Virus record (IMG/VR): IMGVR_UViG_3300050120_000361
Coordinates: 124,001 to 188,000 of that record
Direction: 5' to 3' (one strand)
Length of the DNA stretch: 64,000 bases
The translations under genes and the position numbers were made by a program. Below the pieces are notes generated by a model, which was given only the letters and a program-made list of their open reading frames with translations, was not told the origin of the DNA and ran no database searches. This document shows positions 9,801 to 62,861 of this stretch, one piece after another (the stretch's first letter is position 1; each line of letters opens with the position of its first letter).

Positions 9801-10010
9801 AACCTGTTCACCTTCAACCAGGAGTGCGTCGCGGGCACCGAAGAGGTATTCGTCAATGGCCTGCTAATGGAGCCAGGAACGGACTACACCATAGTGGATG
9901 TGAGCGGCTTCACCCTTGCGGTGACGCCCACCCCAACAGGGTTCAACGGAGCGCCGACGAGGATAAGGTGCAACTACCAGACACCCGGTCCGGGAGTCGG
10001 AGGGTTCTAA
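888..10010 (+). CDS. giant modular tail fibre / virion appendage protein (3040 aa)
   Basis: Four copies of a Y.EL..L.....L.PG..Y..TDY module, Asn/Gly-rich beta-helix-like repeats, repeated ALTG...QLWD domains, C-terminal VNG....GTDYT domain. Confidence 0.75.
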   Translation: MSNFLELPFGIKTLTPTPVIYWEGPYSSIAAANAAVPLGVRYPSMTVRIVPGGNTAPYMAMWGNDVSDNGLAAVQTGGGGGNVQPVSGTYAELTALAQAGSLVPGGRYLLTDYKTSWWSPADSQAHTADVGETLVLLAANANIFSRIAQSLQNPDDELIYEFAYNNLSVGFEINYPVTGRIIRRTDVRGNQINFDFVAIQFAGVPVFDPDAQCANNVIVGSFGFTGTNQQNPVAVMIPLIYPMAIAAGANENFIDSGSQNITIGAGSCGNRIGKNVGQQHGYVISPGSNNNTVADNANQGVAGIIGSGSSYNLLGNGVSRIGSGCSHNTVHDGWSADIAFNNGGSSGNEIGLKGNSGGSGIVLGGGCANNKVKAPNVDMSAGGINGMDIGSGGGHVIGGGCHDITVSNGVTNLTFGSSCYDMWIKDAGLSGTTYANGTNNVWPWSQGGASVIEKTYSELMTLIAGAGLQPGATYKVTDYQTTWVQGITGKVIVNDIEPLWVRAIDASTLEKSVISQQFPSDIIEWNAEVDTILQGSQVPGGAGSALAMIDPTALTGQYPNLASVGIGIGSASNLTWDPTIRGRVSENISPNNGDGTLEIIVSIQNDDDGADLQGLHFMVNGQDYSFVSSGSNGPTYYLNGDGVSPISAAQFPGNVNIQMWDSQQPQDLTTSLPPYTPASNGLPLEDTPTKGLIKRRVDENGNSMPWDLRAAMYESLVQADQPAGPPAAQSSMSIPYRIGELTHRRANFKLDSTALTGDYSGAGNNVFSLDSYASGSSGTGSFLQWHLNQAGKTEGDGFHTGDGSGGDTTPINAEAQLLANSVPFAILFSARNAYTVNANIEYEAPNISVWANVKFKINGVNYKVNTIYGNTQQSVNNPLLRVSDNQPINWTTLLGADPMSHIVSQNLLIQLWDTVEPDAYDLTPFSLGNDSQTYQINILDANSSMLAQLGFAYGEFNRTQPIYQQTYFNPVYPLSAQITTNMDQQGGAFNVMVNGQVTSIGEMAANETRELAGGITPNALFTIYGQAPEANSLAGLLIDDSALTGRYDWGGSLSNDQQSTVGRGDAYVLEVICDQTAETIFAKSYNDGSVNRLEPLIYIPQLADDQSQLTYTVYLSRKAQSNILRISVNGVLSAFQDNNMAARYSQGYSATTPIASGVSGNIQITLFDNDNAQPATSLSDIPDLSAAGQLPNPIQQQLADWSEGQPEIPAIYSDYEVFDDYTQCFGNYAESPFLRTLNIAPQSNGNRILGSSDKIIIRGNSSRNTITDAVLVTLDEYSVENTVTGTNADGNGASPYDGGGFTHVRNIYIGSISSRNRVFASNTSIQEQSCDNFVKEATSTNYSAVSISGQSSNNKILGTNISMGTTSNDNFFDELCNNITAGNDFNDNQVWNQHDMVYGVNCTRNIEQDQSGLSRGDNWQDHNPYRFDPAPIDILYNDLLTLIGVAGLVRGRNYRITDYRTTWVQGLTTRVRAADVEPLIVTALDAQTLDQKVKSALWPADEIYYDIEQSVIGAQSLSYPITGTTKYRIDPSALQFRDLPDLTQGGVSMQYVQSDSSPFMSWNFPDGITDLFQQTQNMLVQVIPTYANGGLDVNDQAVKVKINGEDFAMNVDGDGVAAWISQQDQSNLADRSWGGNILVQLWDLDNPEVYSLLPQTTDVPQLPLQDVPIMGRIYSRKDQYGNKAPYDIRAVLAAFVRQAVQPAGPPTAMFKADVLWEVGPLVHTTPSQYYLKFDNTALTGSFPNNVSVISVEKSNSQDGVQYFVNLAYFRSHFNSPFSSQFGLNTEIAWNGDAIANIMVASSSTTNPHTWPTNLKLKINGVNYTTAPTWPNNQQFAQLVRVSDGAPIDLLAVCSSTRSGRMDNNVLIQLWDTVEPAQYALENVGTPAVQGNEDVNFYVGLFNQADIQANLEIKASNLTQDYTGANSYTFNVGPFGDTSDGSNYLQVGSLNGNNQDVTAAVTKAAMSAQAVYELVGDFADGSLSVDAGGVTYSLANGQFISAADNTTELSTVSFTEGTVFNLWDTTQPAPQAPAPDGFDTGLAVDGAPFGYGTKNQNLALQVIDHTAEYAVAVWSDHDYDGPGFDLIVNGHTDIGNALPRITSLAAGKTHSTNVASNDLTGENIQVQVFGDTANGLVGMQLATLFGGNYDWAGGSSIGDWFDLRVYRDSDFAILLQITPGNIPDIALALQYLDAADTYSVYFGRKLNNNVVSLNFNGTQTNYSDNNIVEFEAATAPEFPLSSVIAAGLSGQNIAIAVWDAVGELNGSAPNPPSIPYLLQPGELAQPAFTPLPDWTDGVPFIPAIYGDSPIFAQDGTVLDNVIEDPRTLTAMFGSGCVGNRLTAGSDRVTMPGYAVGNTIDSATDVMINYGAENNYVSGLDQEGGANNVFIDGSSSGNKVYGSGISIGQNSNDNIVGPNAWLSKIMNGCQRNRVFGQLNLIEDGGVENYIDEQSQSVKVGLNGKQNSFINSSFVTYGQNAVRNTELNSSYVTRPDNWSGNDNSSGPALLLQIGNILNAHFHLATLNWQQVNSLVTRDMFDDGEPLDAESDAYILENTQSVSVTSTLEDGHAHTVSVNYNPYTRKFFVDPATVPANHLCWFIGQDAEAIVWSSYAELSALAANQQLEPGKKYVMSDFTSKFRYNGGITTGPVEWLVLEALNPGQFHGKAQSMQYPKDDIWYDIAAGPIISADAVQGWSNTQLEVNSDGVDAAPFAGATLMLYNATTGESVQTINPGAGDSQNAIVQVPIGFAFRLYPLGVSTGTFWVQINGTSYEVGPYDNSAISDVTQATQIGPDIAANYYGQVYLDQAQVPLYSPLPDNSAGVPEQQVAIPGMITRRVDDQLNEAQYDHRNVYFYSGGEATYTFGASSRNNTVKAIMQDINTYPLCFLGAGAIGNYLDESCFAVSTGINPAFNRIEACQVMTMGEGCQGNYYRGVSNFSVADGTVGFAQWDFMYRNLQVVRDTPSGPVDGSNNLFTFNQECVAGTEEVFVNGLLMEPGTDYTIVDVSGFTLAVTPTPTGFNGAPTRIRCNYQTPGPGVGGF

Positions 10011-14095: not shown

Positions 14096-14137
14096 GGAAA
14101 ATCGTAAACCGTACGTCGTTCTACATTGCGATTGATT

Positions 14138-14169
14138 GCCCGAGAAAGGTTTTTCCTTCTCGGGCTTTA
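14138..14169 (+). terminator. intrinsic terminator hairpin
   Basis: GCCCGAGAAAGG-TTTTT-CCTTCTCGGGC followed by TTTA. Confidence 0.65.
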
Positions 14170-14173
14170 TCCA

Positions 14174-14179
14174 TAAATA
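14174..14179 (+). promoter_or_regulatory. putative late promoter TAAATA
   Basis: T4 late promoter core; between a terminator and the structural operon. Confidence 0.55.
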
Positions 14180-14207
14180 CACAATAACGCCAACAAACAA
14201 AATAATT

Positions 14208-17200
14208 ATGCAGTCGAGTGCCGAAGTTATACTTGCCAACATGGAAATGCTCTACGAGAACATTTTCAACCTTCTCGTGGGTTTCCAGAACGCTTCGGGC
14301 TCTTCGCAGGCTGTCGTGGAGGTCACGCTCAAGAACTCGGACGGCAGCGTTTCAACTTACCCGATAAACACGTTCCAGAACCTCCAAAAGGATTTGGCCC
14401 GCATAGACGCGAACTTCACCTCGCTTACAAACTCGGACAACATATCCTACATACTCGCGGCTGACGGCAGCATATCCCAGTACGCAAAGACCACCTTCAT
14501 GAACGCGGAGTACCTGTCCGGGTTCAAGTTCGGAACCGCCAAAAACGCCACGGACGCCGCCGCGAACTGCATAGTGGACAACTCATCGCTTCTGAAGCAG
14601 ATGGTTTTCCCGAACGTTAAGATACCAATACTCATTGACAGCACCATAATCACGCCCGTGAGGTGCAGGTACTATGACGTTTCCGTGGGATGGGACCAGG
14701 TACCCGCCAATCCGGACGTCGCCACGATAGAGTACCTGATGAGTCAGGGGACAATCGTGGCCGTCAAGGATGAGACGGTTCTGGAGCTTGAGAAGGAGCA
14801 GATACAGTACTTCGGCAACTTCACACTAACGTCTGCCTCAATGACAGGCAACACGGCTACGGTGCAGTTCGCCTCATGGACATACCAGAACCTGTACACC
14901 ACAGGGAGCCCGATAACGCTTAAGATTGGGGACCTGCTGGTTACCGCCGCCGGCTCCACACAGTTCCAGATAGCGGCTATAGACACCTTCACCGGCGTGG
15001 CGACACTGAACCGGGTCGCCGGTACGGGCTCCGTGGCCGTTGGCGTGAGCGTGCTTCAGTACAATCAGGTTCTTGCGAACCCTGAACAGAATATAGTTGG
15101 TGTCCCTGTCACTCCAAACAAGACTTTCGTAATCTTCCTGTCTTCGCAGAACCTTGACGCGATTGGTTATCCGTCCGTAGGCATAAAATTGGACACATCC
15201 ACCTACCAGGTCACTGCCCAGGGCACCAACTATACTTTGGACGACTACTTCGAGAAGTTCGTAACGAACTTTTCCGACTACATATTCGCGCTGATAAACG
15301 AGACCACAATACCCCTGAGCCTCGGCGTCGCCCCGGCACAAATAGTGCTCGACCCAGCCAACTTCACCGTGATACAGACGAACGCGCACGTAACGGACGC
15401 AACCACCACGGCGCAGATAAGCTCGCTCAACCAGCAGAAGCAGAAGATACAGCTGGACATCAACTACCAGCAGACCCAGATAAACACCATACAGAACCAA
15501 ATCGACACGCAGAAGTTCAATTCTGCTTCGGCCAAGCAGGCGGCCCTGGACCAGATACAGGCCCTTAAGAACGCTATAGCGGTCGACAACCAGAACCTCC
15601 TAACCGTTGCCGCGAACCTTGACGCGGATGCGGTTCAGGCCGGACTCAAGTCATTGACGCCGGAGTACGCGGTCCTGGGCTTCTGGCCGATACAGCCGCC
15701 CATATTCTCTCCGCAGACCAAGGCCCAGAACATCATAGGCTACAACGTGCAGTACAGGTACCTGTCCGCTAACGCCGACACGGTGAACTCGACATCCCTG
15801 ACCATGATTGACAATGGGGTGCAGGTGAACGTCGTGTTTTCGGCCTGGAACCAGCTGCCAACGAGGTTCCTGAACAAGGTCCTCCAGCCGGACGGCTCAT
15901 CGGCCTGGGAGGTGCCGGTCCTTGACAGCGTAACCGACATCAACATAAACCAGGCGAACATACCCATAGGCCCCGGGGAGAGCGTTGAGGTAAAGGTGCA
16001 GGCGGTTTCCGAGGCAGGGTACCCAATAAGCTCCCTGACATCGCCTTGGAGCGACTCCCTGAGGATTGACTTTCCGACCTCGCTCGCCAACAACGCGCTT
16101 AACACGATAGTGACGCAGAACGTTACTGACCTGCAGAACGCGCAGTTCCAGAACATACTGCAGACGGCCGGGCTGCTCAAGCACATATCGGGCCAGATAC
16201 AGGAACAGGACCGCTTCTTCATGCACTCAGCCGATGACATAGCCTCGGGCTTCTACTCCCCGGAGCAGAACATAATAGATTTGAAGACGCTCCTGACACA
16301 GATACAGTCGAACATAGCGGCCCTTCAAAGCGCTTCGGTGCTAAACAACGTTACCGTTTCTATAGTGGACTTCGGCGGCGAGAGCTACGTGGTGCAGAAC
16401 AACTCAACAATAAACCTGCAGGCTGGCAACTATTCGGACAGCCTGAACCTGTTGGACAACACCAAGTGGGGCAGTATCATAAGGATGCAGGGTTCCATAC
16501 AGCTTGTGAACAATAACGCGCAGCCGATAGAGATTACCAGCCTCGTGCCGGGCTCGCAGTTCGACTCCACAACGGCCGCGAACTACTACAACACGCCCGT
16601 GAGGACGCAGACTGGATTGGTCCAGAACAGCAAGCAGATACTTTACTTCAGGAATTTGGACATCACCAACCAGACCGAAGACCTGTTCAAGCTCGTGAAG
16701 CCCAAGCTCGCCAACGCAGCCACCAATCCGAACCCGAACTACATAAACAACCAGGCTCTTGAGGCGGACAAGAACATAGTGTACTTGGACACCGACGGAA
16801 ACGTCAAGATATGCGCCCTGCTGTCCAATGCTGGAACCGACTTCGTCGCATTCACCACCGAGAACCCCGTATACGACGTGAACGCCAAGCAGAACATGCT
16901 GCCCGAGTTCGCGCGCGAGAAGCTGTACACGGACAACGTTAAGGCGCTCCAGTACCAGTCAGAGGAAACCGTGAACGACACGCTTGGCCTGGGCTTCAAT
17001 GACAACGACTTCTTCGCGATAGGAGAGACCACTTGCGGCGCCTTCCTCTACCCGATATTCAGCAACATAGCCGCTATAAGCGTTGTGGGCTCCAACACCA
17101 CGTCCTCGCTGATACTCGCTCCGGGCGCACAGATAGTCGTTCCCTTCATGTTCGAGTTCAGGATGATGGACCGGCTCGGAAACGTTGACGGCAGGACCGA

Positions 17201-17390
17201 CACTACGATAAACGACACAATGACCTACAGCAAGAAGGTGGGTCTGGACATGCTCCTCAACAACCAGATGTTCAAGTTCGACATAAACGTTTCAGCAAAC
17301 CTCAAATCCAATGTCGTTCCGATACCTTCCCTAAACGTGTCAAGCGTTACCGCCGCATTCGGAAATGAAACACCTGAAAATCCAAGCTAA
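14208..17390 (+). CDS. large virion structural (baseplate-like) protein
   Basis: Start moved to ATG 14208, after the terminator, TAAATA and A-rich leader; Gln/Asn coiled coil and an FN3-like VKVQAVSEAG..S..S.WS segment; operon with downstream tail genes. Confidence 0.55.
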   Translation: MQSSAEVILANMEMLYENIFNLLVGFQNASGSSQAVVEVTLKNSDGSVSTYPINTFQNLQKDLARIDANFTSLTNSDNISYILAADGSISQYAKTTFMNAEYLSGFKFGTAKNATDAAANCIVDNSSLLKQMVFPNVKIPILIDSTIITPVRCRYYDVSVGWDQVPANPDVATIEYLMSQGTIVAVKDETVLELEKEQIQYFGNFTLTSASMTGNTATVQFASWTYQNLYTTGSPITLKIGDLLVTAAGSTQFQIAAIDTFTGVATLNRVAGTGSVAVGVSVLQYNQVLANPEQNIVGVPVTPNKTFVIFLSSQNLDAIGYPSVGIKLDTSTYQVTAQGTNYTLDDYFEKFVTNFSDYIFALINETTIPLSLGVAPAQIVLDPANFTVIQTNAHVTDATTTAQISSLNQQKQKIQLDINYQQTQINTIQNQIDTQKFNSASAKQAALDQIQALKNAIAVDNQNLLTVAANLDADAVQAGLKSLTPEYAVLGFWPIQPPIFSPQTKAQNIIGYNVQYRYLSANADTVNSTSLTMIDNGVQVNVVFSAWNQLPTRFLNKVLQPDGSSAWEVPVLDSVTDININQANIPIGPGESVEVKVQAVSEAGYPISSLTSPWSDSLRIDFPTSLANNALNTIVTQNVTDLQNAQFQNILQTAGLLKHISGQIQEQDRFFMHSADDIASGFYSPEQNIIDLKTLLTQIQSNIAALQSASVLNNVTVSIVDFGGESYVVQNNSTINLQAGNYSDSLNLLDNTKWGSIIRMQGSIQLVNNNAQPIEITSLVPGSQFDSTTAANYYNTPVRTQTGLVQNSKQILYFRNLDITNQTEDLFKLVKPKLANAATNPNPNYINNQALEADKNIVYLDTDGNVKICALLSNAGTDFVAFTTENPVYDVNAKQNMLPEFAREKLYTDNVKALQYQSEETVNDTLGLGFNDNDFFAIGETTCGAFLYPIFSNIAAISVVGSNTTSSLILAPGAQIVVPFMFEFRMMDRLGNVDGRTDTTINDTMTYSKKVGLDMLLNNQMFKFDINVSANLKSNVVPIPSLNVSSVTAAFGNETPENPS

Positions 17391-26947: not shown

Positions 26948-29668
26948 ATGGACCCAAGGTTATTAGCAATTGCAGCCAAAGCTGCAGGAACTTACTTTAT
27001 CGTGACGGACAATTCGCTTGTTCAAACGACTGCAGTACCGCCTAACCTACGGATAATTTTTGTGAATGTACCGGCCGGTCCTGTTAATACGGTGGTGGTA
27101 TTTCAGCAAGGAGACACCGCAGGCCTGGCCTCAATATTCGGAACCGCTTCCCGCACGCAGGAGAAGAAGGGCAACTACTCACTTAGGACGTGCAACGACG
27201 CGCTTGTCGGCGGACCGATAGGAGTGATAAACCTGCGCGTCTTCGCTTCAGAAGACCTTGTGGGAGTCGCCGGCATATCACCTAACAGCACCTTTTTGGA
27301 GGACAAGACCACGGCTTACGCCAACGTCTTCAACACCAATGGCTTCTGGACGGCCCAGGCCAAAAACATAGCTCCGCTGATGTCCCGCGCCAACTACCTG
27401 AACTTCGCAAACGTCGGAGCTTCGAACGTCAGCATATTCGTCACCTCGGCAATACCGGCCAACTACCAGTCGCTTACCAGCCAGTACGGCAACACGCTTA
27501 CGGCTATGAGCCTGAGCGTTGACGACTATCCTGGTTTGGACATGGGCATCAAGCTGGCCGACACATTCGTTGACGTTTACGTTTTCGCGAACACTTTCGA
27601 CCCGCAGACGGTTTCAACCAACCGCTACTACGGCCAGCTGTTCAACAGCGACGGGAGCATCAACTACGAGAACCTCCCTGCCCTTTCGCTCATACCTGAG
27701 TCCGGCTTCATACGCACAATCACTGGCTCACTGCTGCCAAACCTCCTGAGCGAAAGCGCGGCCGATTTGTCAATAGACACGCTGATGAACACGCTGTACC
27801 CTCAAACGGGCGTGATAGCGCACATCAATGATGATTTGCTGGAAACCGATTTGACCGAGCCGCCCGTGCTCAACGTTAACGCCACGGACGTGTACAACGC
27901 CGACGGCACGCTTAACCAGCTCACAGGTTCGAGCATCAGCATACTGTCGCACATGTTCAAGGAAATCGACGGAATGCCTACGGTTGACCTGGATGAGGTT
28001 CACGACGCTGACGTTGTGGGCATGAACACCCACCTGTTGCTTTCGGTTACTGGCACTATCTTCCAGGACGGCCAGGAAAACGGGAACAAGATACTCTCAA
28101 TCTACGAGCAGGGCACGCGCATTGGCGACGAGATCGTTTTCGAGGATTTGGACACCGAGGACACCAAAACGGTTGTCGTTACTGGCCTTTCCATCATTGA
28201 GCAGAACGTCGCTACGGACCCAATAACGCTTGCGGCCCTTGCCAAGACCGTACTCACTATACCACAGCCCACAGACACCATTTCAGTTGTGTTGGATTGG
28301 ACGGCGGTTACGCACGCGGACACTTACAGCGTGTACCGCAAGAAATCTACCGACTCGGCTTGGGTACTCCTGCAGGGCGCGATTTCAGCGCTTACCTACA
28401 CTGACACGACTGTTCAGCCTTCATTCACATACCAATACTACGTGTTGGCAGTGAACGCCGCGGCGGCCTACGTGTCCAGCATATCAATAGCCAAGCAGAT
28501 AACCACCATTGCGGTTAACGGCGACCCAACCACAATTGGCGCTTCAACTGCGTCCAACAACCAACCGGCCGACCTTCCAACAACAATAGCTGGAACAAAG
28601 ACCTATTCGGTTGCCCTGCTTACCTGCTCTGGACCGGTTAACGCCGCGTCATACACCCGCAAGAAGCCATTCAAGACAATCGCCGGCATAGCCACCATGC
28701 CTTTCGGTCTTGTCGCTTACACGCCGCGTACGGCCCAATTCACCGACGGCACCTCGGCCACCCAGTCCGCGATACTCGACGTGATGAACACGCCGGGACT
28801 CGTTAAGGGCATAGCCGCTCTCGGCACGGCGCGCTACGTAGTGGACGCTTTCAAGTCCTTCGTTGAAGGGAGCTACAAGTACCAGTACGGCCAGTTGGCG
28901 TACACGCTCGACGCTAAGAACACTTTCGTCCGTAACATCATCAACGAGCCGTTCCTGCAGGACCTGCAGAAGTCCACCAACCCGCTGTTCTCGCAAGGGC
29001 CTGGCTTCCCATTCGACCCAAGCTACCTCGCGCAGGGCGGCAATCCGGACTTCTCCACAGTCCTGCTCTCCAAGTTCGGACAAGGCTCTGAGATGAGCTT
29101 CTTCTTCGGCTCCGGTAACGTTGACGCTAAGGGCAATGTGTCTCCGGTTGCGGGAATAGTGTCAAACGTGTTCATTAACAAGCAGTTCCCTTACGACGTT
29201 GCTGCCAATGCGAGCGGCTACCTGACAGGCATAACAGGCCTTGAGGACAGCCCCAACGGTTCCGACGACCGCCTGCCATATGAGCAGTTCCTCTGGAACC
29301 CGATAATAGCGCAGAAGGGAAGCTTCACGATATACGGCAACTTTACCGGCCAGAAAATCAACACCTCCCTTCAGGCCATACACAACTCTGAGCTGCTCGC
29401 CTACGTTAAGGGCACCCTGCTAGCGATGACCATTGACGACCCGTTCAAGAAGGGCCTGTACAACGAGTACCTCGCAACGCAGACCGAGGTCAACACTTTC
29501 ATCCAGAGCCTCGTGCTCGCGGGCGCGATACAGCCGAACCCTATCGTGATATGCGACGCCACCAACAACACCGTTGACGTGTCAAAGGCTAAAATCAAGC
29601 TGATACACGTAGAGTACACCGGCGTTGACTGCCTTGACAAGACTGTGTTTGATTTGAACCTGGACTAA
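26948..29668 (+). CDS. gp18: contractile tail sheath protein with inserted FN3 domain
   Basis: N-terminal AGTY; C-terminal WNPI...IYGN.T...SLQ.I...ELL and ICDATNNT sheath motifs. Confidence 0.85.
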   Translation: MDPRLLAIAAKAAGTYFIVTDNSLVQTTAVPPNLRIIFVNVPAGPVNTVVVFQQGDTAGLASIFGTASRTQEKKGNYSLRTCNDALVGGPIGVINLRVFASEDLVGVAGISPNSTFLEDKTTAYANVFNTNGFWTAQAKNIAPLMSRANYLNFANVGASNVSIFVTSAIPANYQSLTSQYGNTLTAMSLSVDDYPGLDMGIKLADTFVDVYVFANTFDPQTVSTNRYYGQLFNSDGSINYENLPALSLIPESGFIRTITGSLLPNLLSESAADLSIDTLMNTLYPQTGVIAHINDDLLETDLTEPPVLNVNATDVYNADGTLNQLTGSSISILSHMFKEIDGMPTVDLDEVHDADVVGMNTHLLLSVTGTIFQDGQENGNKILSIYEQGTRIGDEIVFEDLDTEDTKTVVVTGLSIIEQNVATDPITLAALAKTVLTIPQPTDTISVVLDWTAVTHADTYSVYRKKSTDSAWVLLQGAISALTYTDTTVQPSFTYQYYVLAVNAAAAYVSSISIAKQITTIAVNGDPTTIGASTASNNQPADLPTTIAGTKTYSVALLTCSGPVNAASYTRKKPFKTIAGIATMPFGLVAYTPRTAQFTDGTSATQSAILDVMNTPGLVKGIAALGTARYVVDAFKSFVEGSYKYQYGQLAYTLDAKNTFVRNIINEPFLQDLQKSTNPLFSQGPGFPFDPSYLAQGGNPDFSTVLLSKFGQGSEMSFFFGSGNVDAKGNVSPVAGIVSNVFINKQFPYDVAANASGYLTGITGLEDSPNGSDDRLPYEQFLWNPIIAQKGSFTIYGNFTGQKINTSLQAIHNSELLAYVKGTLLAMTIDDPFKKGLYNEYLATQTEVNTFIQSLVLAGAIQPNPIVICDATNNTVDVSKAKIKLIHVEYTGVDCLDKTVFDLNLD

Positions 29669-36371: not shown

Positions 36372-37373
36372 ATGTCAACAGAGAAAGACGAAATCAAGAA
36401 GCAAAAACTGGCCGAGCTCGAACAGCTTGAAAGCACCGCCAAAGGAACCGAACCGGAAGCAGCGCCAATCGAAACCGAGACTCAGCCCGAGGACGAGGAC
36501 GACAACATAGTGCGCATGGACGCTCCAAAAATGATTGACGGCTACCGCATACTCGCAAGGCCGAACATGCCATTCGGCGGCGCGCTGTACCCGCCGTCTT
36601 GGACCTTCGCCTACAAGTGCCCAATTTCCAAGCAGATCGCGAACTTCTCCACGCTCAACGAGCAGGACCAGCCCGCGATAGTGGCTGCCATCGAGGAACT
36701 GGTTAAGGCCTGCTTCGTGATACTGGACGAGAACAACGGACAGACAATAGACACTGGCGAACTGAACGACGGCGACAGGCTGTTCTTCTTCCTGCTCCTG
36801 CGCGAATTTTACCTGCACGACAAGCCCATCACGTACACCACAATAAGCCAGAACTGGCAGGAGCCCGTACAGGTAGAGCTGCTCGCCTCCAGGCTGAAGT
36901 ACAAGACACTCAGCGCCGGCCTTCTCGCGTGCTTTGACGGCCGCATATTCACGATACCGGTTAACGAAGAGTCCGAGCCGATAGTGTTCCGCGTCCCTAC
37001 TTTCAAGGCTTCTGGCAAGGTGTTCCGGCACATAGTCAAGGTGTACCGAGACAGCCAGAACGCGGACGAGACAGAGAGCAAGAAGATGCTTGACGACGAG
37101 TCGTTCAACAAGCAGTTCCTGCTGGTGGCGCCGTTCCTTTTCGTTACCGGCAACGAGACAATAGACGCCCTCAAGACCAAGTTCAAGAAGATACAGTACA
37201 ATGAGGACCTACTCAACAGCTACCTCACGGTGATAAACAAGCTCAAACTGGACAACATGGAGCGCATCGCCTACACGTACAAGGGCTCTGAGGAGGAGAC
37301 CCTGATGCGATTTCCCGGAGGATGGAAGAACATGTTTATCGATAACCAGGCTTTCGGAGGAATATTCGACTAA
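36372..37373 (+). CDS. baseplate hub assembly / tail assembly chaperone, gp26-like
   Basis: ELNDGDRLFFFLLLREF and FRVPT motifs; upstream of the tape measure gene. Confidence 0.55.
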   Translation: MSTEKDEIKKQKLAELEQLESTAKGTEPEAAPIETETQPEDEDDNIVRMDAPKMIDGYRILARPNMPFGGALYPPSWTFAYKCPISKQIANFSTLNEQDQPAIVAAIEELVKACFVILDENNGQTIDTGELNDGDRLFFFLLLREFYLHDKPITYTTISQNWQEPVQVELLASRLKYKTLSAGLLACFDGRIFTIPVNEESEPIVFRVPTFKASGKVFRHIVKVYRDSQNADETESKKMLDDESFNKQFLLVAPFLFVTGNETIDALKTKFKKIQYNEDLLNSYLTVINKLKLDNMERIAYTYKGSEEETLMRFPGGWKNMFIDNQAFGGIFD

Positions 37374-37376
37374 GAT

Positions 37377-37725
37377 ATGGGGGCCGAAGGAGGAAAAGAA
37401 GACAGCATTCCCTACCTGGTCTGAACTCTACTCGGCGAGCAAAATCGACTGGAACAGCTACTACGAGTCGGCTATAATACTGTCCGTAAAGAGCCACAAC
37501 AGCTTTGAGCAGATAGAGAACCTGGAGTTCTTTAAGTTCAATTTGCTGATGAAGTACCTGAATATATACATAGAGAACGAGAACAAACAGCAACAAAGCC
37601 CCGAAGACGCCGAAAACAAGAAGGACGAACTAATGCAGCAGTCCGCCAAGCACATGGCGGAAGCCAAGAAGAATATGCCGAAAGCGCCTAAGATGCCGAC
37701 AATAAAAGCACCAAAACTGAAGTAA
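37377..37725 (+). CDS. gp51-like baseplate hub assembly protein; 5' end unresolved (needs a +1 shift or non-AUG start)
   Basis: Frame open from 37306 to 37725 reads YYESAIILSVKSHNSFEQIENLEFFKFNLLMKYLNIYIENENK; first canonical start (TTG 37543) lies inside the conserved-looking region. Confidence 0.5.
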
Positions 37726-37735
37726 AAACACGGAA

Positions 37736-39565
37736 ATGAGCAGACTGAACAACCTCAACGAAGCGGTAATAGACACCACCAAATTCACAGGAAATGGCGG
37801 CGGTGACTTGAACATCAGACTCGCTAAGAAAGGCGCTGGAAAGTCCCTGCTTGACGACATTGAGGACGAGGACGCCGGCGCATTTGCGCCCCTTTTGCCT
37901 AACGACATTGTAGACACAAAGACAATAGCGCAGAGGCTCGCTGAAAAGAATGAGCAGTTGGCAGCCCAAACAGTTAAGGACACGAACAGGGCCGCCGAGC
38001 TTAAGGCGCTGATGCAGCTCAGGCAGAAGAAGCGCCCCGAGATAAGGCACCAGAAAACCGAGAAACAGGACCTGAACGCACAACTGCTCGACAGAACCGA
38101 TGCCGAGGAAATGCAGCTGCAGCTGCAGAACAGGCAGTTGATACAGGACTACACCGAGGCAACCGGCAACCGGCTCCCTGAAGACACTGAAATGGTGGAG
38201 ACCGTGGAGCAGATTGAGGAGGCGCTTGACGAGATACCGACAGGCGACAAGGAGGTCACGCTCGCGGACTTCGACATCGTTCCGACACCAATCCGCAAGG
38301 ACAAGACGGGCTACACAAAGACCCTCGTAACCATAAAGAAGGGCTCCGTTCCACAGGAGATGAGCGCGCTCGCCACTGAGGTTAAGAAGCTGTCCAAGGG
38401 CGTGATAAGGCACCGCATAATGGACATGCGCACCATAGCGAACACCAACAAGACGCAGCTGCGCGGGTCTGATTTAAAGCTCGGCCTCGTGTCAATAAAC
38501 TTCAAGCCCGACGGCGAGAGCCGCGTCAACAAGGGCACCAGGTTCATAGTGTCCGTTCCGGAGGACTTCCAATCCTCACGGGACGTTGTCGTGTACATAC
38601 AGGAAAGCCGCGACAAGACGATACTGGTCCTGAAAGGGAACACTTTCTCCAACTGGCCGACAATGCAGGAATTCCTTGCCGAGGCCATAGCGAATTACTA
38701 CCAGTACGGGTTCGCTTCAACCAAGACCATGCTCAAATCCAACGGCATAAGCAATCCGCTCCTTGCCGTGGTTAAGTCGGTTTCATCCTCTGGGAGATAC
38801 ACGGTCGAGCCGAAGACGGACGCCGAAGGGCGCATCGAGCAGCTAACCATAGAGAGCAAGGGCACTGACAACCAGTGGCTTCGCGTCGTGGTGCTCGAGG
38901 GGCAGCTTGCTGCGACATACAAGGTCAAGTGCCGTTCCGAGATTGACACCAATTGGTCAGTGGACATAAACAACCCAAAAGGGCATCCTCTCACCATACT
39001 GGACCTGAACGGGGACAAGTTCATAGGCATACTTGACAAGCTTTACGCGAAACAGGACTGGGGAATGGACTCTGGTGGAAGCAGGGAATACTACATGCTT
39101 GCCAAGCTGACCTACCGTGCGCTGAGGGACGCGTTCGTCAGGATGTGGACTATAGTGGATGAGCCGGAGACCAACGCAATAGGCCTGGTCATTGGCGGCA
39201 CGCTTTCGCAGAAGGACACCGCAAAGGACATACCAGGCTCGTACGCCGCGGAGGGCATTATAGGCAAGACCAGCCATTTCGACTACTTCATACTGACCTA
39301 CCTTGCGGTGCAGGAACTGGGCGGCGACAAGCGCAATCCGCAGGAGTACATCACCACGGACGAGTACCATGAAAAGTACAACATAGCCAACAGGGGCAGG
39401 TACCAGGACAGACCCGCTACCATTCTCAAGAAAGAGGGCGAAAAGCGCAACTACCACGCAAGGGTGTACAAGTTCCAGCTCGAATACGAAATAGCCGGCA
39501 GCAAGCACAAGCTTGTCAACAGCTCATTGGATGCCATACTCGAAGAGAGCGGCCTGCTCAAATAA
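37736..39565 (+). CDS. hypothetical protein, possible head-internal protein
   Basis: 609 aa; N-terminal NLNEAV; charged coiled-coil N-terminal half. Confidence 0.6.
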   Translation: MSRLNNLNEAVIDTTKFTGNGGGDLNIRLAKKGAGKSLLDDIEDEDAGAFAPLLPNDIVDTKTIAQRLAEKNEQLAAQTVKDTNRAAELKALMQLRQKKRPEIRHQKTEKQDLNAQLLDRTDAEEMQLQLQNRQLIQDYTEATGNRLPEDTEMVETVEQIEEALDEIPTGDKEVTLADFDIVPTPIRKDKTGYTKTLVTIKKGSVPQEMSALATEVKKLSKGVIRHRIMDMRTIANTNKTQLRGSDLKLGLVSINFKPDGESRVNKGTRFIVSVPEDFQSSRDVVVYIQESRDKTILVLKGNTFSNWPTMQEFLAEAIANYYQYGFASTKTMLKSNGISNPLLAVVKSVSSSGRYTVEPKTDAEGRIEQLTIESKGTDNQWLRVVVLEGQLAATYKVKCRSEIDTNWSVDINNPKGHPLTILDLNGDKFIGILDKLYAKQDWGMDSGGSREYYMLAKLTYRALRDAFVRMWTIVDEPETNAIGLVIGGTLSQKDTAKDIPGSYAAEGIIGKTSHFDYFILTYLAVQELGGDKRNPQEYITTDEYHEKYNIANRGRYQDRPATILKKEGEKRNYHARVYKFQLEYEIAGSKHKLVNSSLDAILEESGLLK

Positions 39566-39575
39566 ACAAAATCAG

Positions 39576-39893
39576 ATGAAGATAGAGAACATATCCCAGG
39601 ACCGTCAGACCAAACTGATGATGGCCATTGAGGCTAACGCATCAAGCGTTAGGCGCAGAAACGTTTCCTATACGATATACTGCTATTCTGATTTCATGGG
39701 AGTAATAACCCTTACCGTGTCCGGCAAAAGAGGAAGCGTGACAAAGGCAATTGCTGTGAACTTTGACTTGCTGCTTGAGCGTTGGACTGTTTTCTCAGAT
39801 GGCAAGAAGTACACGCTAGACCAGTTGTCCGAACTTCAGGCAATTATGAAGAGCATTGTGGCCAAGGAAACTACGAACGCGGGCAAGATATAG
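39576..39893 (+). CDS. hypothetical protein
   Basis: Start moved to in-frame ATG 39576 after an A-rich leader, removing the overlap with the upstream gene. Confidence 0.55.
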   Translation: MKIENISQDRQTKLMMAIEANASSVRRRNVSYTIYCYSDFMGVITLTVSGKRGSVTKAIAVNFDLLLERWTVFSDGKKYTLDQLSELQAIMKSIVAKETTNAGKI

Positions 39894-40088: not shown

Positions 40089-43000
40089 ATGAAATCAGCC
40101 GCCCTTGAGCAACCAACGCAAGTAGACATGGGCTTCTCGTCCATGGTTAACATGCTTGCTCAAATGGGCAAGGAGGAGAGGCAGCAGAGCGGAGTGCTTG
40201 GTTCAATACTTGAACGCGCCACGGAAATCAAGGTTTCCGTAACGGATGCGTTCAAGTCTTTCTCATTCGACAGGACTCAAAAATTCAACGTTTACCAAAA
40301 CATTCAGACAGCCCAGCACAAGACAAACAACTGGCTTGAGGCGCTCTTCATAGAATTGCTTTCGATACGCAAGCACGTCGTTGGCATAGAGTCCGGACAG
40401 GAGGGCATGAAGCCCAAGGCAGAAAAGATGCAGAGCGGCAGACCCCTCGACTACACCGAAACCTTCAAGAAATCAAACGACCATCTCTCGGCAATATCCG
40501 CAAACACCAAGTCAGCGCTCAAATTCCTTGAGGGAATAGCCAATGGCAAAAAGGTCGAGGCTCCCAAGGCCGGACACAAGGTTGGGGAGGAAGAGGATGA
40601 GGGCTTCCACGACACCAAAAAGAAGGTGAAGGGTTTCTTCAATGTGGCCGAGTTCGCCAAATCAATTGCGATACTGAACGCGAACATAACCAAGAAAATG
40701 ATAAGCGGGCTCGGAGCGTTCGAAAAGGCCTACGCGAGCCTTCTGGAAATGCCTGAAAAGAAGATGAAGACATTCACTGATGGGACTACCAAGTTCGGTT
40801 CAGTAATGGAGAAACTCTCCAAACAGATAAAGCCCGCCGCGATAACAATAGGCGTGCTTTCCGCTGCGTTTGTAGCTTTGAGCCTGTCTGTGACCAATCC
40901 GATATTCATTGTCGGTATGGCAACAATAGGCCTGTTCGTCACGCTCGTAAAAAGGTACGGCGGCGACAAGGACGCGGACAGGGGAATGCTGAAATTCGCT
41001 GAAGGCATAGGGATACTAACGCTTGCAATGGGCCTGATGCGCTTTGTGCAATGGGAGTCCGGTGCCAAGATGCTGGTATTCATTGCTGGACTCGGTCTGG
41101 CTATGAAGCTCTACATGAAACCCGCGGAGACTTCGGGAATGTTCAAGTTCGCGATGGGTATAGGCATCCTTACGGTTGCCATGGCCCTGATGAATTTCGT
41201 GGACTGGTCCTCAGGGGCCAAGATGCTGATATTCATTGGCGGTCTCGGACTGGCTTTGCGGACCTTCAGCGGTTCCGGCGCGAACGGCGGGCTCGGCAAG
41301 CAGTTGCTAGCTTTCGGTGAGGGGCTCGGCATAATGGTTCTCGCGCTCGTTGCTTTCAACTACATAAACTTCACTTCGGTCCTGAAGATGATAACCTTCG
41401 TGGCGGGGCTCGGACTCGCCCTCAAGCTGTTCGGAGAAGACAAGGGCGGCCTAAAATCCCCACTGCTCTCGTTTGCGTTCGGCATTGGATTGATGGTTCT
41501 TGGGCTGCTCGCGTTCGCTGAGATACCGCTCACGGCCATAATGAAGATGCTTACGTTCATTGGCCTATTGGGCCTTGAGCTCAAGCTTTTCTCCAACGGG
41601 GACGGCAAGTCGCCGATGCTTCAATTCGCAATGGGTTTGGGCATAATGGTTCTCGCCATGTATGCCATGAATGAGCTTCCGTGGGAGGCTCTCGGAAAGA
41701 CTTTGCTGTTCCTGGGCGGTCTCGGACTGGTTATGAAGCTGTTCGAAGGCGGCTCGGGCGCCGATTTCCTTATGATGGCAGGCGGCATACTGGTAATAGC
41801 CGGAGCCCTTTGGGTCTTCAAGAAGATAGGCTGGACCATGGCGGACGCCCTGATACTTGGCGGCACGATAACCATACTCGGAGTGATAGTGGCCGCTGCA
41901 GGAGCCCTAGCTGAGGTGATAGTCCCTGGAGCCATTTCAATGGTGGCTATGGGTGTTTCACTCGCGCTGTTCGCGCTCAGCCTGTGGGCAATATCCAAGC
42001 TTACGATAGACTACGAGTCTATAGCCAAATTCGGGGTGGCCGCTCTCGGCCTTACCACGATGATGGCCCTGATAGCTCCGCTAGCCGCTTTGGGCGCGAT
42101 AGGCGCTGTCCTGTTCCTGCCGATAGCCGCCGCAGCCCTTCTGGGTGCCGGCTCACTTATGCTAATATCCAAAGTACGGAATTATGATACGAAAAACTTT
42201 GCAGACGCGGTATTCGACCTCACATGGGGCTTTACCAAAATTGCTCCATTCGCTGCTCTTGGTGTCATTGGGGCTACTCTTTTTCTACCAATTGCAGCAA
42301 GCGCTCTCCTTGGAGCGGCAGCGCTCAAAGCAATATCGCTACTCGCTTTCGACCAAAAGGCAATCACAGCCTACGGGGTTGGCGTCAACTCACTGATCGG
42401 AGCCCTGGACAACCTGGGCATAATACAGGTCACTCGGACCGCGGCCAAGTCGGTGCTGCTGCTGCCAATATTCGCCGCGGCGACATTGGGAGCGCTCGCG
42501 CTTAAGGCAATGTCTGAAATGGACCTGAATGAGGGAAAGGTGAACCTGGCGGCCAAGCTAATAGACAGCTTCTCATCATCGATGATTTACACCATACTCA
42601 GGAACAAGGACAGGTTCGAGAAGGCGATGCCGGGAATAAACGCATTGGCCAAGCTTATGGGAATATCCTCGGACGTCGCCAAGGCGATAGGCATGATGGC
42701 CAACATGGAGTTCGTTGAGCATGGGGTCAGGAACGGGAAGCTGTACATCAAGTCCGTGCGCAAGCTGAACCCCGCGGACATGAAGCGGGTGGGGGAGAAC
42801 CTGGCCGTAATGCTCCAATGCCTTATCGAGCCTTTGACCATTCTCGGCTCTGACACGGCAACGTTCAACATAGGCGGCAGGAAGATAGCCAACCCGTTCA
42901 AGAACCCAAGCGCGCTAAAGGGGATAGACATGCTGTCCAGGGTTGGCGGTGCTTTCAAGCCATTAATGGACTCAATATCCGAGTACGCGAACCTGCCGCT

Positions 43001-43703
43001 CGCGTCAGACCCTAAGAAGCTTCAGCTGTTCACACAAAGTCTGATGTCGGTCATAAATACCATTATATGGGCGATAGACCGCGCGGCTACGATTAAGCAG
43101 GACATAGCTTCCAAGTCCATAACAACAATATCCAGGTTCGTAAGCTCAATGAAGGACCTTAACGTGGACAGGTTCAACGGCATAAACTCTGCGGTTGAGA
43201 AGTTCCTTGGCAACCTTGCGGATGACGTCAAGTGGAAGAAGATAGCCAGCAACATGAACATGCTCCAGCAGCAGTTCAAGGGTATAGCGTCCTCGATAAA
43301 CTCCATAGACATGGGCAAGGCCACAATGTTCGAGAAGAACGTGCGCAACCTGCTGGACAAGAACGCAGGCGAGAACCTCACCCTTGTGGTTCAGGAGCTC
43401 AAGGAGTTGTTCGGACTTGTTTCGGGGCAGTACAAGGCCCAGGCCGATGCTGCCCAGGCGCCAGCCAGAGACGACAAGAAGGACAATTCAATATCCTTCG
43501 GCTTCAACAACGGCCCACAGGACAAGAAGGCCGCTAAGGCCGTAGGGAAGCCCACTGAGCACGAGGAGATGACAGAGCTTATGAACCAAATAGGGATGGC
43601 GCTCGCGGCCATAGTTCAGCAGCTGACCGGCGTCAACGACAAACTCGCTGGCAAGTTGAAGGTTGTGACCACAACTGGAACGGCCAACAGCTTTTTACCG
43701 TAA
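40089..43703 (+). CDS. tail tape measure protein
   Basis: 1204 aa, Ala/Gly/Leu-rich helical, tandem hydrophobic repeats, downstream of hub/chaperone genes. Confidence 0.75.
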   Translation: MKSAALEQPTQVDMGFSSMVNMLAQMGKEERQQSGVLGSILERATEIKVSVTDAFKSFSFDRTQKFNVYQNIQTAQHKTNNWLEALFIELLSIRKHVVGIESGQEGMKPKAEKMQSGRPLDYTETFKKSNDHLSAISANTKSALKFLEGIANGKKVEAPKAGHKVGEEEDEGFHDTKKKVKGFFNVAEFAKSIAILNANITKKMISGLGAFEKAYASLLEMPEKKMKTFTDGTTKFGSVMEKLSKQIKPAAITIGVLSAAFVALSLSVTNPIFIVGMATIGLFVTLVKRYGGDKDADRGMLKFAEGIGILTLAMGLMRFVQWESGAKMLVFIAGLGLAMKLYMKPAETSGMFKFAMGIGILTVAMALMNFVDWSSGAKMLIFIGGLGLALRTFSGSGANGGLGKQLLAFGEGLGIMVLALVAFNYINFTSVLKMITFVAGLGLALKLFGEDKGGLKSPLLSFAFGIGLMVLGLLAFAEIPLTAIMKMLTFIGLLGLELKLFSNGDGKSPMLQFAMGLGIMVLAMYAMNELPWEALGKTLLFLGGLGLVMKLFEGGSGADFLMMAGGILVIAGALWVFKKIGWTMADALILGGTITILGVIVAAAGALAEVIVPGAISMVAMGVSLALFALSLWAISKLTIDYESIAKFGVAALGLTTMMALIAPLAALGAIGAVLFLPIAAAALLGAGSLMLISKVRNYDTKNFADAVFDLTWGFTKIAPFAALGVIGATLFLPIAASALLGAAALKAISLLAFDQKAITAYGVGVNSLIGALDNLGIIQVTRTAAKSVLLLPIFAAATLGALALKAMSEMDLNEGKVNLAAKLIDSFSSSMIYTILRNKDRFEKAMPGINALAKLMGISSDVAKAIGMMANMEFVEHGVRNGKLYIKSVRKLNPADMKRVGENLAVMLQCLIEPLTILGSDTATFNIGGRKIANPFKNPSALKGIDMLSRVGGAFKPLMDSISEYANLPLASDPKKLQLFTQSLMSVINTIIWAIDRAATIKQDIASKSITTISRFVSSMKDLNVDRFNGINSAVEKFLGNLADDVKWKKIASNMNMLQQQFKGIASSINSIDMGKATMFEKNVRNLLDKNAGENLTLVVQELKELFGLVSGQYKAQADAAQAPARDDKKDNSISFGFNNGPQDKKAAKAVGKPTEHEEMTELMNQIGMALAAIVQQLTGVNDKLAGKLKVVTTTGTANSFLP

Positions 43704-62017: not shown

Positions 62018-62033
62018 TCACAAAATATAGCTG

Positions 62034-62861
62034 GTGCGTTCCAAAAAGAAACCAATAACGCTTGAGGAATACATCAAGCAGCAGGCCAAAAAGGAAAAGG
62101 CTGGAAAGGCCGCAGGGACAAGGGCGGACTTCTTCAAGGAGAAGTACGCCCAATCCATTAAAGACGCGAGCGGCAACGAAAACCTTGAGAAGCTCATCGA
62201 TGACTACGACATCAAGGTCGGAAAGTACTCGTTGCGCACGAAGATAAGGAACAACCCATGGGTGAAGGCGGGCAGGCCCGCGTCCAAGGCCCTTGAGTGG
62301 CTCTTCAAAACGGTGTTCAAGAACCCGGAAACCTACAGGTACAAGCAGAACCTGCTCGCACAGGGGCAATTGTTCTTCTTCGAGTACAAGAACCCTAAGT
62401 ACAAGAACACTGCCAAGCTACCCTGGTTTGACAAGTACCCTCTGGTGCTTTCGCTCGGTCCGGTTGTGACCAAGCTCGGGGTCAGGAACATAGGCTTCAA
62501 CCTCCACCTGCTTCCGCCAAAGGTGCGCATAGTCGTGCTGTGCCACATATTCGAACTCTACAAGCGCTTCTACAGGTACCAGATATTCTACAAGAAGCAG
62601 GGCGCCGTGCAGATAAAGTACCAGTACATCATAAAGTCACTGGACAAGTTCGGCGCGGGCTTCGCGGTAAGGATGTACATCCCTGCGCGTCAGAACGTAA
62701 TCGTTGTCTTTCCCTTCAGGGAGTGGCACAAGGCCATATTCCTGCCGAGTCGCGGTTACGATTCGATAAAGGCCGCCAAGCTTATACAGCTTTGGCTGAA
62801 GTACGTTAGGGCCCGCAAGTTCAGCACGAGTCCGAACATCAACTGGAACACTAACATATAG
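62034..62861 (+). CDS. gp2: DNA end protector protein, T4 gp2-like
   Basis: G.L.FFEY, LPWFDKYPLVL, GFNLH.LPP..R, W..AIFLP. Confidence 0.85.
   Translation: MRSKKKPITLEEYIKQQAKKEKAGKAAGTRADFFKEKYAQSIKDASGNENLEKLIDDYDIKVGKYSLRTKIRNNPWVKAGRPASKALEWLFKTVFKNPETYRYKQNLLAQGQLFFFEYKNPKYKNTAKLPWFDKYPLVLSLGPVVTKLGVRNIGFNLHLLPPKVRIVVLCHIFELYKRFYRYQIFYKKQGAVQIKYQYIIKSLDKFGAGFAVRMYIPARQNVIVVFPFREWHKAIFLPSRGYDSIKAAKLIQLWLKYVRARKFSTSPNINWNTNI

Follow-up and report, generated by a model that had tools for sequence, protein, structure and literature searches.

A start-less reading frame conserved at +1 relative to a hub assembly chaperone gene of the T4 gp26/gp51 family in uncultivated contractile-tailed phages, a candidate for +1 ribosomal frameshifting

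How is a long and conserved open reading frame (ORF) translated if it has no canonical start codon ahead of its conserved part? This question is raised by a locus in a 64-kb window of DNA (bases 124001-188000 of the 208.5-kb IMG/VR record IMGVR_UViG_3300050120_000361, which carries direct terminal repeats; positions below are those of the window), where a gene for a protein resembling the T4 gp26/gp51 baseplate hub assembly chaperones (36372..37373, + strand) terminates at TAA 37371-37373 and is overlapped at its 3' end by a second ORF, which we call X. X occupies the +1 frame relative to the chaperone-like gene, and this frame, after a TGA at 37303-37305, has no further stop from 37306 until the TAA at 37723-37725 (139 codons). 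Its first ATG, GTG or TTG is TTG 37543, and the next ATG is at 37549, whereas the block conserved among X homologues (FPTW...) begins at 37408, i.e., 135 nt 5' of the first canonical start, and the homologues align across this block. These positions confirm the original prediction, made from the letters of the window, that the +1 frame is open from 37306 to 37725 and lacks a canonical start before the conserved segment of the gene. X and one GTG-start gene apart, every real ORF of the window has an ATG among its first ~30 codons. The likeliest mechanism in our view, to which we would give about an even chance, is a conserved +1 ribosomal frameshift at CGA_UUU_CCC that yields a chaperone-X fusion protein.

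We compared 34 distinct related junctions, and examined a distant subfamily of X separately. The relatives in IMG/VR were recovered by alignment-based scans only; pattern scans of IMG/VR with single proteins returned nothing, and no relatives were found in cultured phage genomes by blastn or by tblastn with both the chaperone-like protein and X. X lies in the +1 frame of the chaperone gene at all 34 junctions, as well as in the distant L048 and the P0227 contig. The comparison with related phages called for in the original prediction returned the start-less +1 arrangement at each of the 34 junctions. An invariant TTT_CC (Phe-Pro) is located ~60 nt before the chaperone stop (34/34), in every junction the +1 frame opens at this site or just ahead of it, and the overlap segment is stop-free in every locus. 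The frame is also kept open up to X across variable-length linkers in AT-rich DNA, for which the chance is 0.09-0.47 per locus, and this argues that the +1 frame is entered at or before the chaperone stop. On the other hand, openness over the last 20 codons is mostly forced by the amino-acid sequence (per-locus probability 0.3-1.0, product ~1e-3); it is a weaker argument than it first appears, and we would not rest the case on it by itself. In the window, L002, L005 and L035, the conserved block has no canonical start ahead of it, and the candidate starts of the other loci are scattered (-110, -89, -53, -35, -5, +4, +7, +37 and +52). A start-like codon (ATG/GTG/TTG/CTG/ATH) is shared at any +1-frame position by at most 13 of the 34 loci, whereas TTC is present at the slip position in all 34. 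In a clade of nine loci (L006, L007, L009, L010, L019, L024, L032, L034 and L046), the +1 frame is open 16-24 codons further upstream, and a conserved GTG is found at -89 (-92 in L032), where X could start with a 30-codon overlap.

The location of the first canonical starts could also mean that X is a short protein of 58-60 amino acids (aa) translated from TTG 37543 or ATG 37549, with the open frame upstream of them untranslated, and gene callers indeed gave 58-78-aa versions in many relatives. We consider this very improbable, since the most conserved part of the family (FPT..E.Y..S.I....YY..C...S.K.SN) precedes TTG 37543, and the stretch before this TTG is stop-free in every locus despite the AT-rich sequence. 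Homologues that begin at the position of TTG 37543 had been named as the case that would speak against an earlier entry into the frame; the homologues align across the block upstream of it instead.

Further evidence comes from the codons close to the chaperone gene's 3' end. We scanned the synonymous sites in a codon alignment of 24 chaperone genes, with z > 4.5 defining a hot spot, and all but one of the hot-spot columns of the whole 333-codon gene fall within the last 30 codons. Codons ~305-309 (GGG TCN GAG GAG GAG, containing GGAGG) reach z values of 7-10 at third positions in AT-rich relatives; downstream of them, F314 is TTT in 24/24 genes (z 4.1), P315 has a surplus of CCC (z 7.8), I/V323 is C-ending in 22 of the 24 loci (z 9.8), G330 is GGA (z 4.8) and F332 is TTC (z 4.2). 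Codon 313, directly 5' of TTT, is CGA, the rarest Arg codon, in 14 of the 17 Arg-bearing loci, compared with ~3% of the Arg codons elsewhere in these genes. By codon share, the site in the window reads CGA (2%), TTT (11%) and CCC (20%), followed later by another TTT (11%) and ATC (14%), and CGA, TTT and ATC are all disfavoured codons in the window. Furthermore, the +1 peptide over the last 11 codons is conserved with z = 13.7 relative to synonymous shuffles, in comparison with z ≤5 for other parts of the gene. Since +1-frame stops occur two codons before TTC in 9 loci, and the dual-coding constraint is seen from codon 322, the frame would have to be entered within ~9 codons (314-322), and TTT_C is the only codon in this interval whose tRNA can re-pair at +1 in every locus.

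The GGAGG sequence itself is near-invariant in the DNA alignment A3. It is kept (GAG GAG GAG) in genomes of 24-30% GC that otherwise lack Shine-Dalgarno (SD) sequences, at the same position in L002-L047, and is missing in L026 and L013/L033. GGAGG-N11-17-TTTCC occurs 4 times in the genome versus 3.4 times expected by chance, thus the combination is not a repeated signal. GAAGAAGAA would be an altered version of the element GAGGAGGAG, as a reporter variant.

What we infer from the observed anatomy of the junction, its conservation and the codon-level constraints, namely that a shift occurs, where exactly, how efficiently and what the fusion does, is as follows. The majority of ribosomes would stop at TAA 37371 and release the chaperone alone, and a fraction would slip +1 with the peptidyl-tRNA-Phe in the P site, which would leave UUU 37311-37313 and re-pair on UUC 37312-37314, aided by a very rare codon, CGA, in the E site and by an uncommon one, CCC, in the A site. 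The shifted ribosomes would read the +1 frame on to 37722, giving a fusion of 450 aa (a length calculated from the coordinates) that comprises residues 1-314 of the chaperone and 136 residues of overlap peptide, linker and X domain. X would thereby take the place of the C-terminal tail of the chaperone, which starts right after the last beta-hairpin of the structural model. One gene would in this way supply two tail-assembly products at a fixed ratio, a counterpart of lambda G/GT or P2 E/E+E'. In the frameshifting of release factor 2 (RF2), +1 slippage is favoured when E-site pairing is weak and the A-site codon is slow, a picture that may be matched here by the rare CGA (or by AAA/AAG) ahead of UUU and by the CCC enrichment behind it. 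UUU_Y is documented as prone to +1 shifting in bacteria; influenza PA-X (UCC_UUU_CGU) shifts at this site, as YopN-TyeA probably does (PMC5009743). The tail assembly chaperones of long-tailed phages are likewise described to make two products by -1, -2 or +1 frameshifts, with T4 as the stated exception (PMC5009743). A +1 shift near CGA TTT CCC leading to a chaperone-type fusion was among the options raised in the original prediction, and the TTT_CC found in 34/34 junctions together with the codon constraints makes it the best-supported explanation of those we weighed.

However, a number of observations weigh against this frameshift. In-frame TTT_CCN is not avoided elsewhere in the genome (11 of 34 Phe-Pro pairs), therefore UUU_C alone is not strongly shifty there, and the A-site codon is CCA rather than the rare CCC in 12 of the 34 loci. 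The spacing of GGAGG to the site is 14 nt, compared with the 3 nt that stimulate the +1 shift of RF2 (PMC10798248). RNAalifold and folding of the junction revealed no conserved downstream RNA structure: RNAalifold returned only a 5-bp UUUCC/GGAAA hairpin that stems from invariant codons and shows no covariation, and the junction of the window folds less stably than shuffled sequence (z = +1.1). The fusion would drop the most conserved C-terminal motif of the chaperone. The resemblance of the upstream protein to the fold of known tail assembly chaperones (TACs), described below, is under the reliable level of the tool (Z 4.3-5.4), with a Foldseek probability of 0.20 for 2ob9. The 609-aa protein encoded after X resembles neither T4 gp29 nor gp27 and matches no Pfam model, those for tape measure proteins included. 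In most relatives the overlap does hold a canonical start of some kind (GTG at -89 or -53, TTG at -5, ATG at +4/+7). Finally, a profile search of 1.84 billion representatives found 177 X clusters, and there is no natural in-frame chaperone-X fusion among the 150 matches listed of these 177, a result that favours a separate start of X.

Such a separate start, lineage-specific and located in or just after the overlap, is the main rival to the frameshift, a possible though rather unlikely explanation. In the window it would be ATA 37375, which lies one base past the upstream stop, where just-terminated ribosomes could reach it by translational coupling and make a low-level product of 116 aa. The codon at this position is AUN in all listed members of the clade of the window, namely, ATA in the window, L041, L002, L047, L003 and L005, ATC in L042, ATT in L043 and ATG in L016; ATG is found at +4 and +7 in L016 and L017, TTG is found at -5 in several loci, and the ...CTAAGAT upstream of ATA resembles genuine starts of this genome. 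T4 hub genes offer precedents: gene 28 overlaps gene 27 by 56 nt and has its start within it, in the +1 frame, and the T4 record annotates a second product of gene 26, 26', that starts inside gene 26. The start of 26' is said to be an internal AUU, a report attributed to Nivinskas et al. in 1992. The distant subfamily of X (L048 796-1212; P0195, P0206 and P0227) also shares an N-terminus, M-x-S-N-P-Y-S-Y, that is encoded inside the overlap, likewise in the +1 frame, and has its beginning 4-6 codons past a TTT_CAG of the upstream gene; this apparent conserved Met start (ATG in L048) counts for a separate start and against a frameshift.

Family-wide, however, a start-like codon is shared at one position by at most 13/34 loci, so that the near-cognate codon at a common position seen in the clade of the window (+4/+7) is not a family trait, and near the stop AUN is lacking in L035, L004, L007, L010, L014, L026 and L031. 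An Ile codon alternating between ATA, ATC and ATT ahead of a conserved W or Y has the look of a normal K-I-[WY] peptide within a protein. At F332, TTC is over-represented (z = 4.2) and abolishes the TTG at -5, and strong synonymous constraints (ATC, TTT, CGA and GGAGG) lie 30-80 nt upstream of ATA, where the window has no possible +1-frame start. In addition, the genome uses ATG almost exclusively. Of the proposal that X starts at ATA 37375, then, the AUN codon holds within the clade of the window, but it is not conserved across the family.

We also considered ATG 37377, which is in the frame of the upstream gene and out of frame with X. Its context, TAAGATATG, is similar to TAAGGATATG before 12310 and 47855, and as originally noted, it is typical of the genome and yields only 15 codons. 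This short ORF includes a G run, ATGGGGGCC (G5, 37379-37383), and deletion of one G from the run does yield the ATG-initiated long ORF, as claimed. X might then start at ATG 37377 and reach its frame by a +1 slip at the second codon, GGG_G, giving MGPKEEKK..., a scenario that we judge highly improbable. The ATG has the usual AAGAT-ATG context of the genome, and ATATGGGG is conserved in the window, L041 and L002, in which GGG_G or GGG_A could let tRNA-Gly re-pair. The slip could, however, apply to these three only, since L003, L005, L042, L043 and L047 lack the ATG. This ATG arises simply because ATA is followed by TGG (Ile-Trp); where relatives read ATA TAT, ATC TAT, ATT TAT etc., no ATG occurs there in any frame and the same open +1 frame is maintained, and the conservation of the frame and the upstream codon constraints would be left unexplained.

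Alternatively, homopolymer runs being error-prone and one G fewer yielding an ATG-initiated ORF, the G5 run could be a sequencing or assembly error, the true gene having four Gs after ATG 37377, or X could be a decaying pseudogene. This is hardly credible in view of the relatives. The two junctions nearest to that of the window, L041 (upstream protein 76% identical) and L002 (67%), read TAA G ATA TGG GGA, with a G4 run followed by A rather than C, where the window reads ATA TGG GGG, and all three share the frame of X with the ATG out of frame; the equivalent short ORF in L041 and L002 has 6 codons. The assembly error suggested earlier is thus contradicted by G4 relatives that keep the same frame as the G5 window. 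Moreover, 34 independent assemblies agree on the frame, and X is under purifying selection in the 177 clusters.

Based on sequence profiles and a structural model, we assign the upstream gene to the T4 gp26/gp51 family of hub assembly chaperones; T4 gp26 and gp51 are listed as such (PMC3004832), and the PF12322 profile spans both of them. The upstream protein has 78 homologues of 305-357 aa. PF12322 is matched by 5 of 35 homologues (best E-value 4.9e-6), the protein of the window itself having no match at E ≤ 0.01, and precomputed PF12322 matches are present on several homologues. An hhalign comparison of the upstream family with the single T4 gp26 sequence gave nothing. The AlphaFold2 (AF2) model of the upstream protein (predicted local distance difference test score, pLDDT, 84.8) is similar to an ESM Atlas cluster with TM scores of 0.71/0.67 over 268 residues, and 42% of the members of this cluster carry PF12322. 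In the model, the globular part ends at a beta-hairpin of residues 298-311 and residues 312-333 form a conserved tail, so the TTT codon 314 falls at the end of the globular domain. Residues 50-158 of the model match 3fgx (Z 5.4), the HK97 tail assembly chaperone 2ob9 (Z 4.6) and YqbN 3klu (Z 4.3), a weak TAC-like fold resemblance that is suggestive only.

Alignment A2 contains 24 X homologues. All but one of the 150 matches listed of the 177 X clusters are 58-158 aa long, and their called starts spread over 60 profile positions. X is modelled by AF2 as five helices (pLDDT 67), and its C-terminal motif is basic. As judged by the searches, X is without a detectable relative of known function: there was no family match of note in Pfam and PHROG, no match among PDB sequences, PDB folds and BFVD folds, and no similarity to T4 gp28. 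The label "gp51-like" given to this downstream ORF in the original prediction does not hold, since hhalign of the X family against T4 gp51 gave a probability of 0.1, and membership of the gp26/gp51 family belongs to the upstream gene. Nor did the context of a chaperone upstream of a tape measure gene hold, because the gene after X has no similarity to a tape measure protein; it encodes a well-conserved 609-aa protein with a globular-looking sequence. A conserved 105-aa gene (39576-39893) follows the 609-aa gene in the window and in the relatives L002-L004, and after it comes a ~1200-aa gene (1204 aa, 40089-43703) that could encode a tape measure or spike protein.

The gene content of the window, in which a tail sheath, tail proteins and a DNA polymerase are encoded and all real genes are on the + strand, points to a large contractile-tailed phage. 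The chaperone-like gene sits in a contractile-tail/baseplate module, with the sheath and the tail proteins encoded upstream of it on the same strand. The host is probably a Bacteroidota-like and SD-blind bacterium, given that the sequence before the gene starts of the window is A-rich and without an SD motif, and that almost all starts are ATG. The codon usage is odd for a window of 53% GC, with shares of 69% for ATA among the Ile codons, 11% for TTT among the Phe codons and ~2% for CGA among the Arg codons. A 276-codon ORF (62031-62861) has GTG at codon 1 as its sole plausible start, its first ATG being codon 214. In a large ORF at 14136-17390 (phrog_29329, E-value 4.6e-158), a TTG comes directly after the preceding stop, and ATG first appears 24 codons in; the profile of this PHROG reaches ~15 positions past the ATG version, leaving the true start uncertain. 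A 3040-aa ORF is located at the start of the window (888-10010). One of the relatives, L047, comes from a metagenome-assembled genome labelled Burkholderia, in which the homologous chaperone-X pair (63% identity) occupies a 2.6-kb contig; this is probably a phage contig that was mis-binned.

Other routes into the +1 frame were considered and set aside. A quadruplet-decoding tRNA is unlikely, as the 208-kb genome has only two tRNAs, tRNA-Leu(GAG) and tRNA-Gln(UUG), whose genes are outside the window at genome positions 83063-83145 and 99361-99432. Hopping between take-off and landing codon pairs around the stop is workable in a few loci only, RF2-like slippage at the stop and AAA_A, CCC_G and GGG_G sites are each missing from many loci, and no -1 slippery heptamer was found at the junction. 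The features of the locus are collected in Table 1.

Table 1. Positions in the 64-kb window of the features of the chaperone-X junction and of neighbouring genes
Feature	Position	Strand	Description
Tail sheath gene	26948..29668	+	phrog_34521, E-value 5.5e-93; upstream of the chaperone-like gene
Upstream gene P0002	36372..37373	+	333 aa; T4 gp26/gp51-family (PF12322) baseplate hub assembly chaperone-like
GGAGG element GAGGAGGAG	37290..37298	+	SD-like, conserved at synonymous sites, 14 nt upstream of TTT
Candidate +1 frameshift cassette CGA_TTT_CCC	37308..37316	+	TTT_CC 34/34, CGA and CCC enrichment
Overlap segment in the +1 frame (PEDGRTCLSITRLSEEYST)	37315..37373	+	Dual-coding with the C-terminal tail of the upstream gene
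TAA stop of the upstream gene	37371..37373	+	
ORF X past the upstream stop	37372..37725	+	Variable linker 37372-37407; conserved helical domain from FPTW 37408
In-frame ATA	37375..37377	+	Rival candidate non-AUG start; would give a 116-aa stand-alone protein
Short out-of-frame ORF from ATG 37377	37377..37424	+	15 codons plus TGA; includes the G5 run 37379-37383
Peptide IDWNSYYESAIILSVK	within 37408-37542		Example of a peptide encoded upstream of TTG 37543
3' parts of ORF X			Low-complexity stretch, basic C-terminal motif, stop 37723-37725
Conserved 609-aa gene	37736..39565	+	Function unassigned; follows X in the window and relatives

Comparison with known systems shows both likeness and difference. 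As in lambda G/GT, and also in P2 E/E+E', Mu (-2) and HSTV-2 (+1), the last being an archaeal myovirus with a +1 tail chaperone frameshift (PMC5009743), the 3' end of a tail-assembly gene is overlapped by a start-less ORF of ~115-135 codons. An overlapping second ORF without a conserved start and in a fixed other frame, which marks systems of the G/GT type, is present in 34/34 junctions. The arrangement is also kept across a large phage family despite low similarity, within a tail module downstream of the sheath gene, and the upstream protein may share the weak TAC-like fold resemblance. In contrast to lambda G/GT, the candidate shift is +1 at UUU_C instead of -1 at an X_XXY_YYZ heptamer; the upstream protein, of 333 aa and assigned to the T4 gp26/gp51 family (PF12322), is outside the known TAC families; the gene after X is not recognisably a tape measure gene; and the proposed shift, put forward here from sequence, would occur 20 codons before the stop and replace a conserved tail. 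With the UUU_Y sites of +1 shifting (E. coli UUU_Ynn, influenza A PA-X and Yersinia YopN-TyeA), the site has in common a UUU_C on which tRNA-Phe could re-pair to UUC, as well as unusual flanking codons, here the rare CGA before and the enriched CCC after. It differs from them in that the A-site codon is CCN (Pro), including the commoner CCA in 12/34 loci, and not a rare Arg codon, in the probably SD-blind host, and in the GGAGG 14 nt upstream, which has no counterpart at those sites.

The RF2 gene prfB, including that of Bacteroidia, similarly combines a +1 shift with a conserved GGAGG-like upstream element in organisms otherwise lacking SD sequences (PMC10798248). However, its site is CUU_UGA, with a stop in the A site and the SD sequence 3 nt upstream, whereas CGA_TTT_CCC contains no stop and has its GGAGG at 14 nt. 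The T4 hub genes resemble the locus in that gene 26, within which 26' begins, and gene 51 belong to the family of the upstream gene, and in the +1-frame overlap of genes 27 and 28 (L040 6349-6404), although T4 gene 28 uses an ordinary ATG. On the other hand, transcription of T4 genes 26 and 51 is divergent, an X homologue follows neither of them, and T4 relies on initiation, ordinary or, reportedly, at AUU, rather than on frameshifting.

Gene callers mis-annotate X across the family, with products of 58-158 aa that cut the conserved domain or borrow chance starts, and annotation pipelines would best handle the chaperone-X pair as a candidate for recoding. Should AUA or another AUN be the start of X instead, non-AUG initiation would be family-wide here, in hosts of a group in which AUG is used almost always. 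The G-T frameshift has been described as conserved in long-tailed phages "except T4" (PMC5009743). We tentatively suggest, as a combined view that is on the whole doubtful, that the gp26/gp51 chaperones are the missing counterpart of G/GT: a large uncultivated clade of contractile-tailed phages, probably of Bacteroidota, would obtain both products by a +1 frameshift at [CGA/AAR]_UUU_CCN, T4 would do so through the paralogues 26 and 51 plus the internal start of 26', and GGAGG would reflect the use of the anti-SD sequence during elongation in an SD-blind host. If the frameshift is true, a new conserved +1 recoding site with an unusual three-codon cassette would join the small set known in bacteriophages, and the T4-type hub chaperones would be linked to the G/GT paradigm, to which T4 has so far been the stated exception. 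The family would then also provide a natural test of whether SD-blind ribosomes use an internal GGAGG in elongation.

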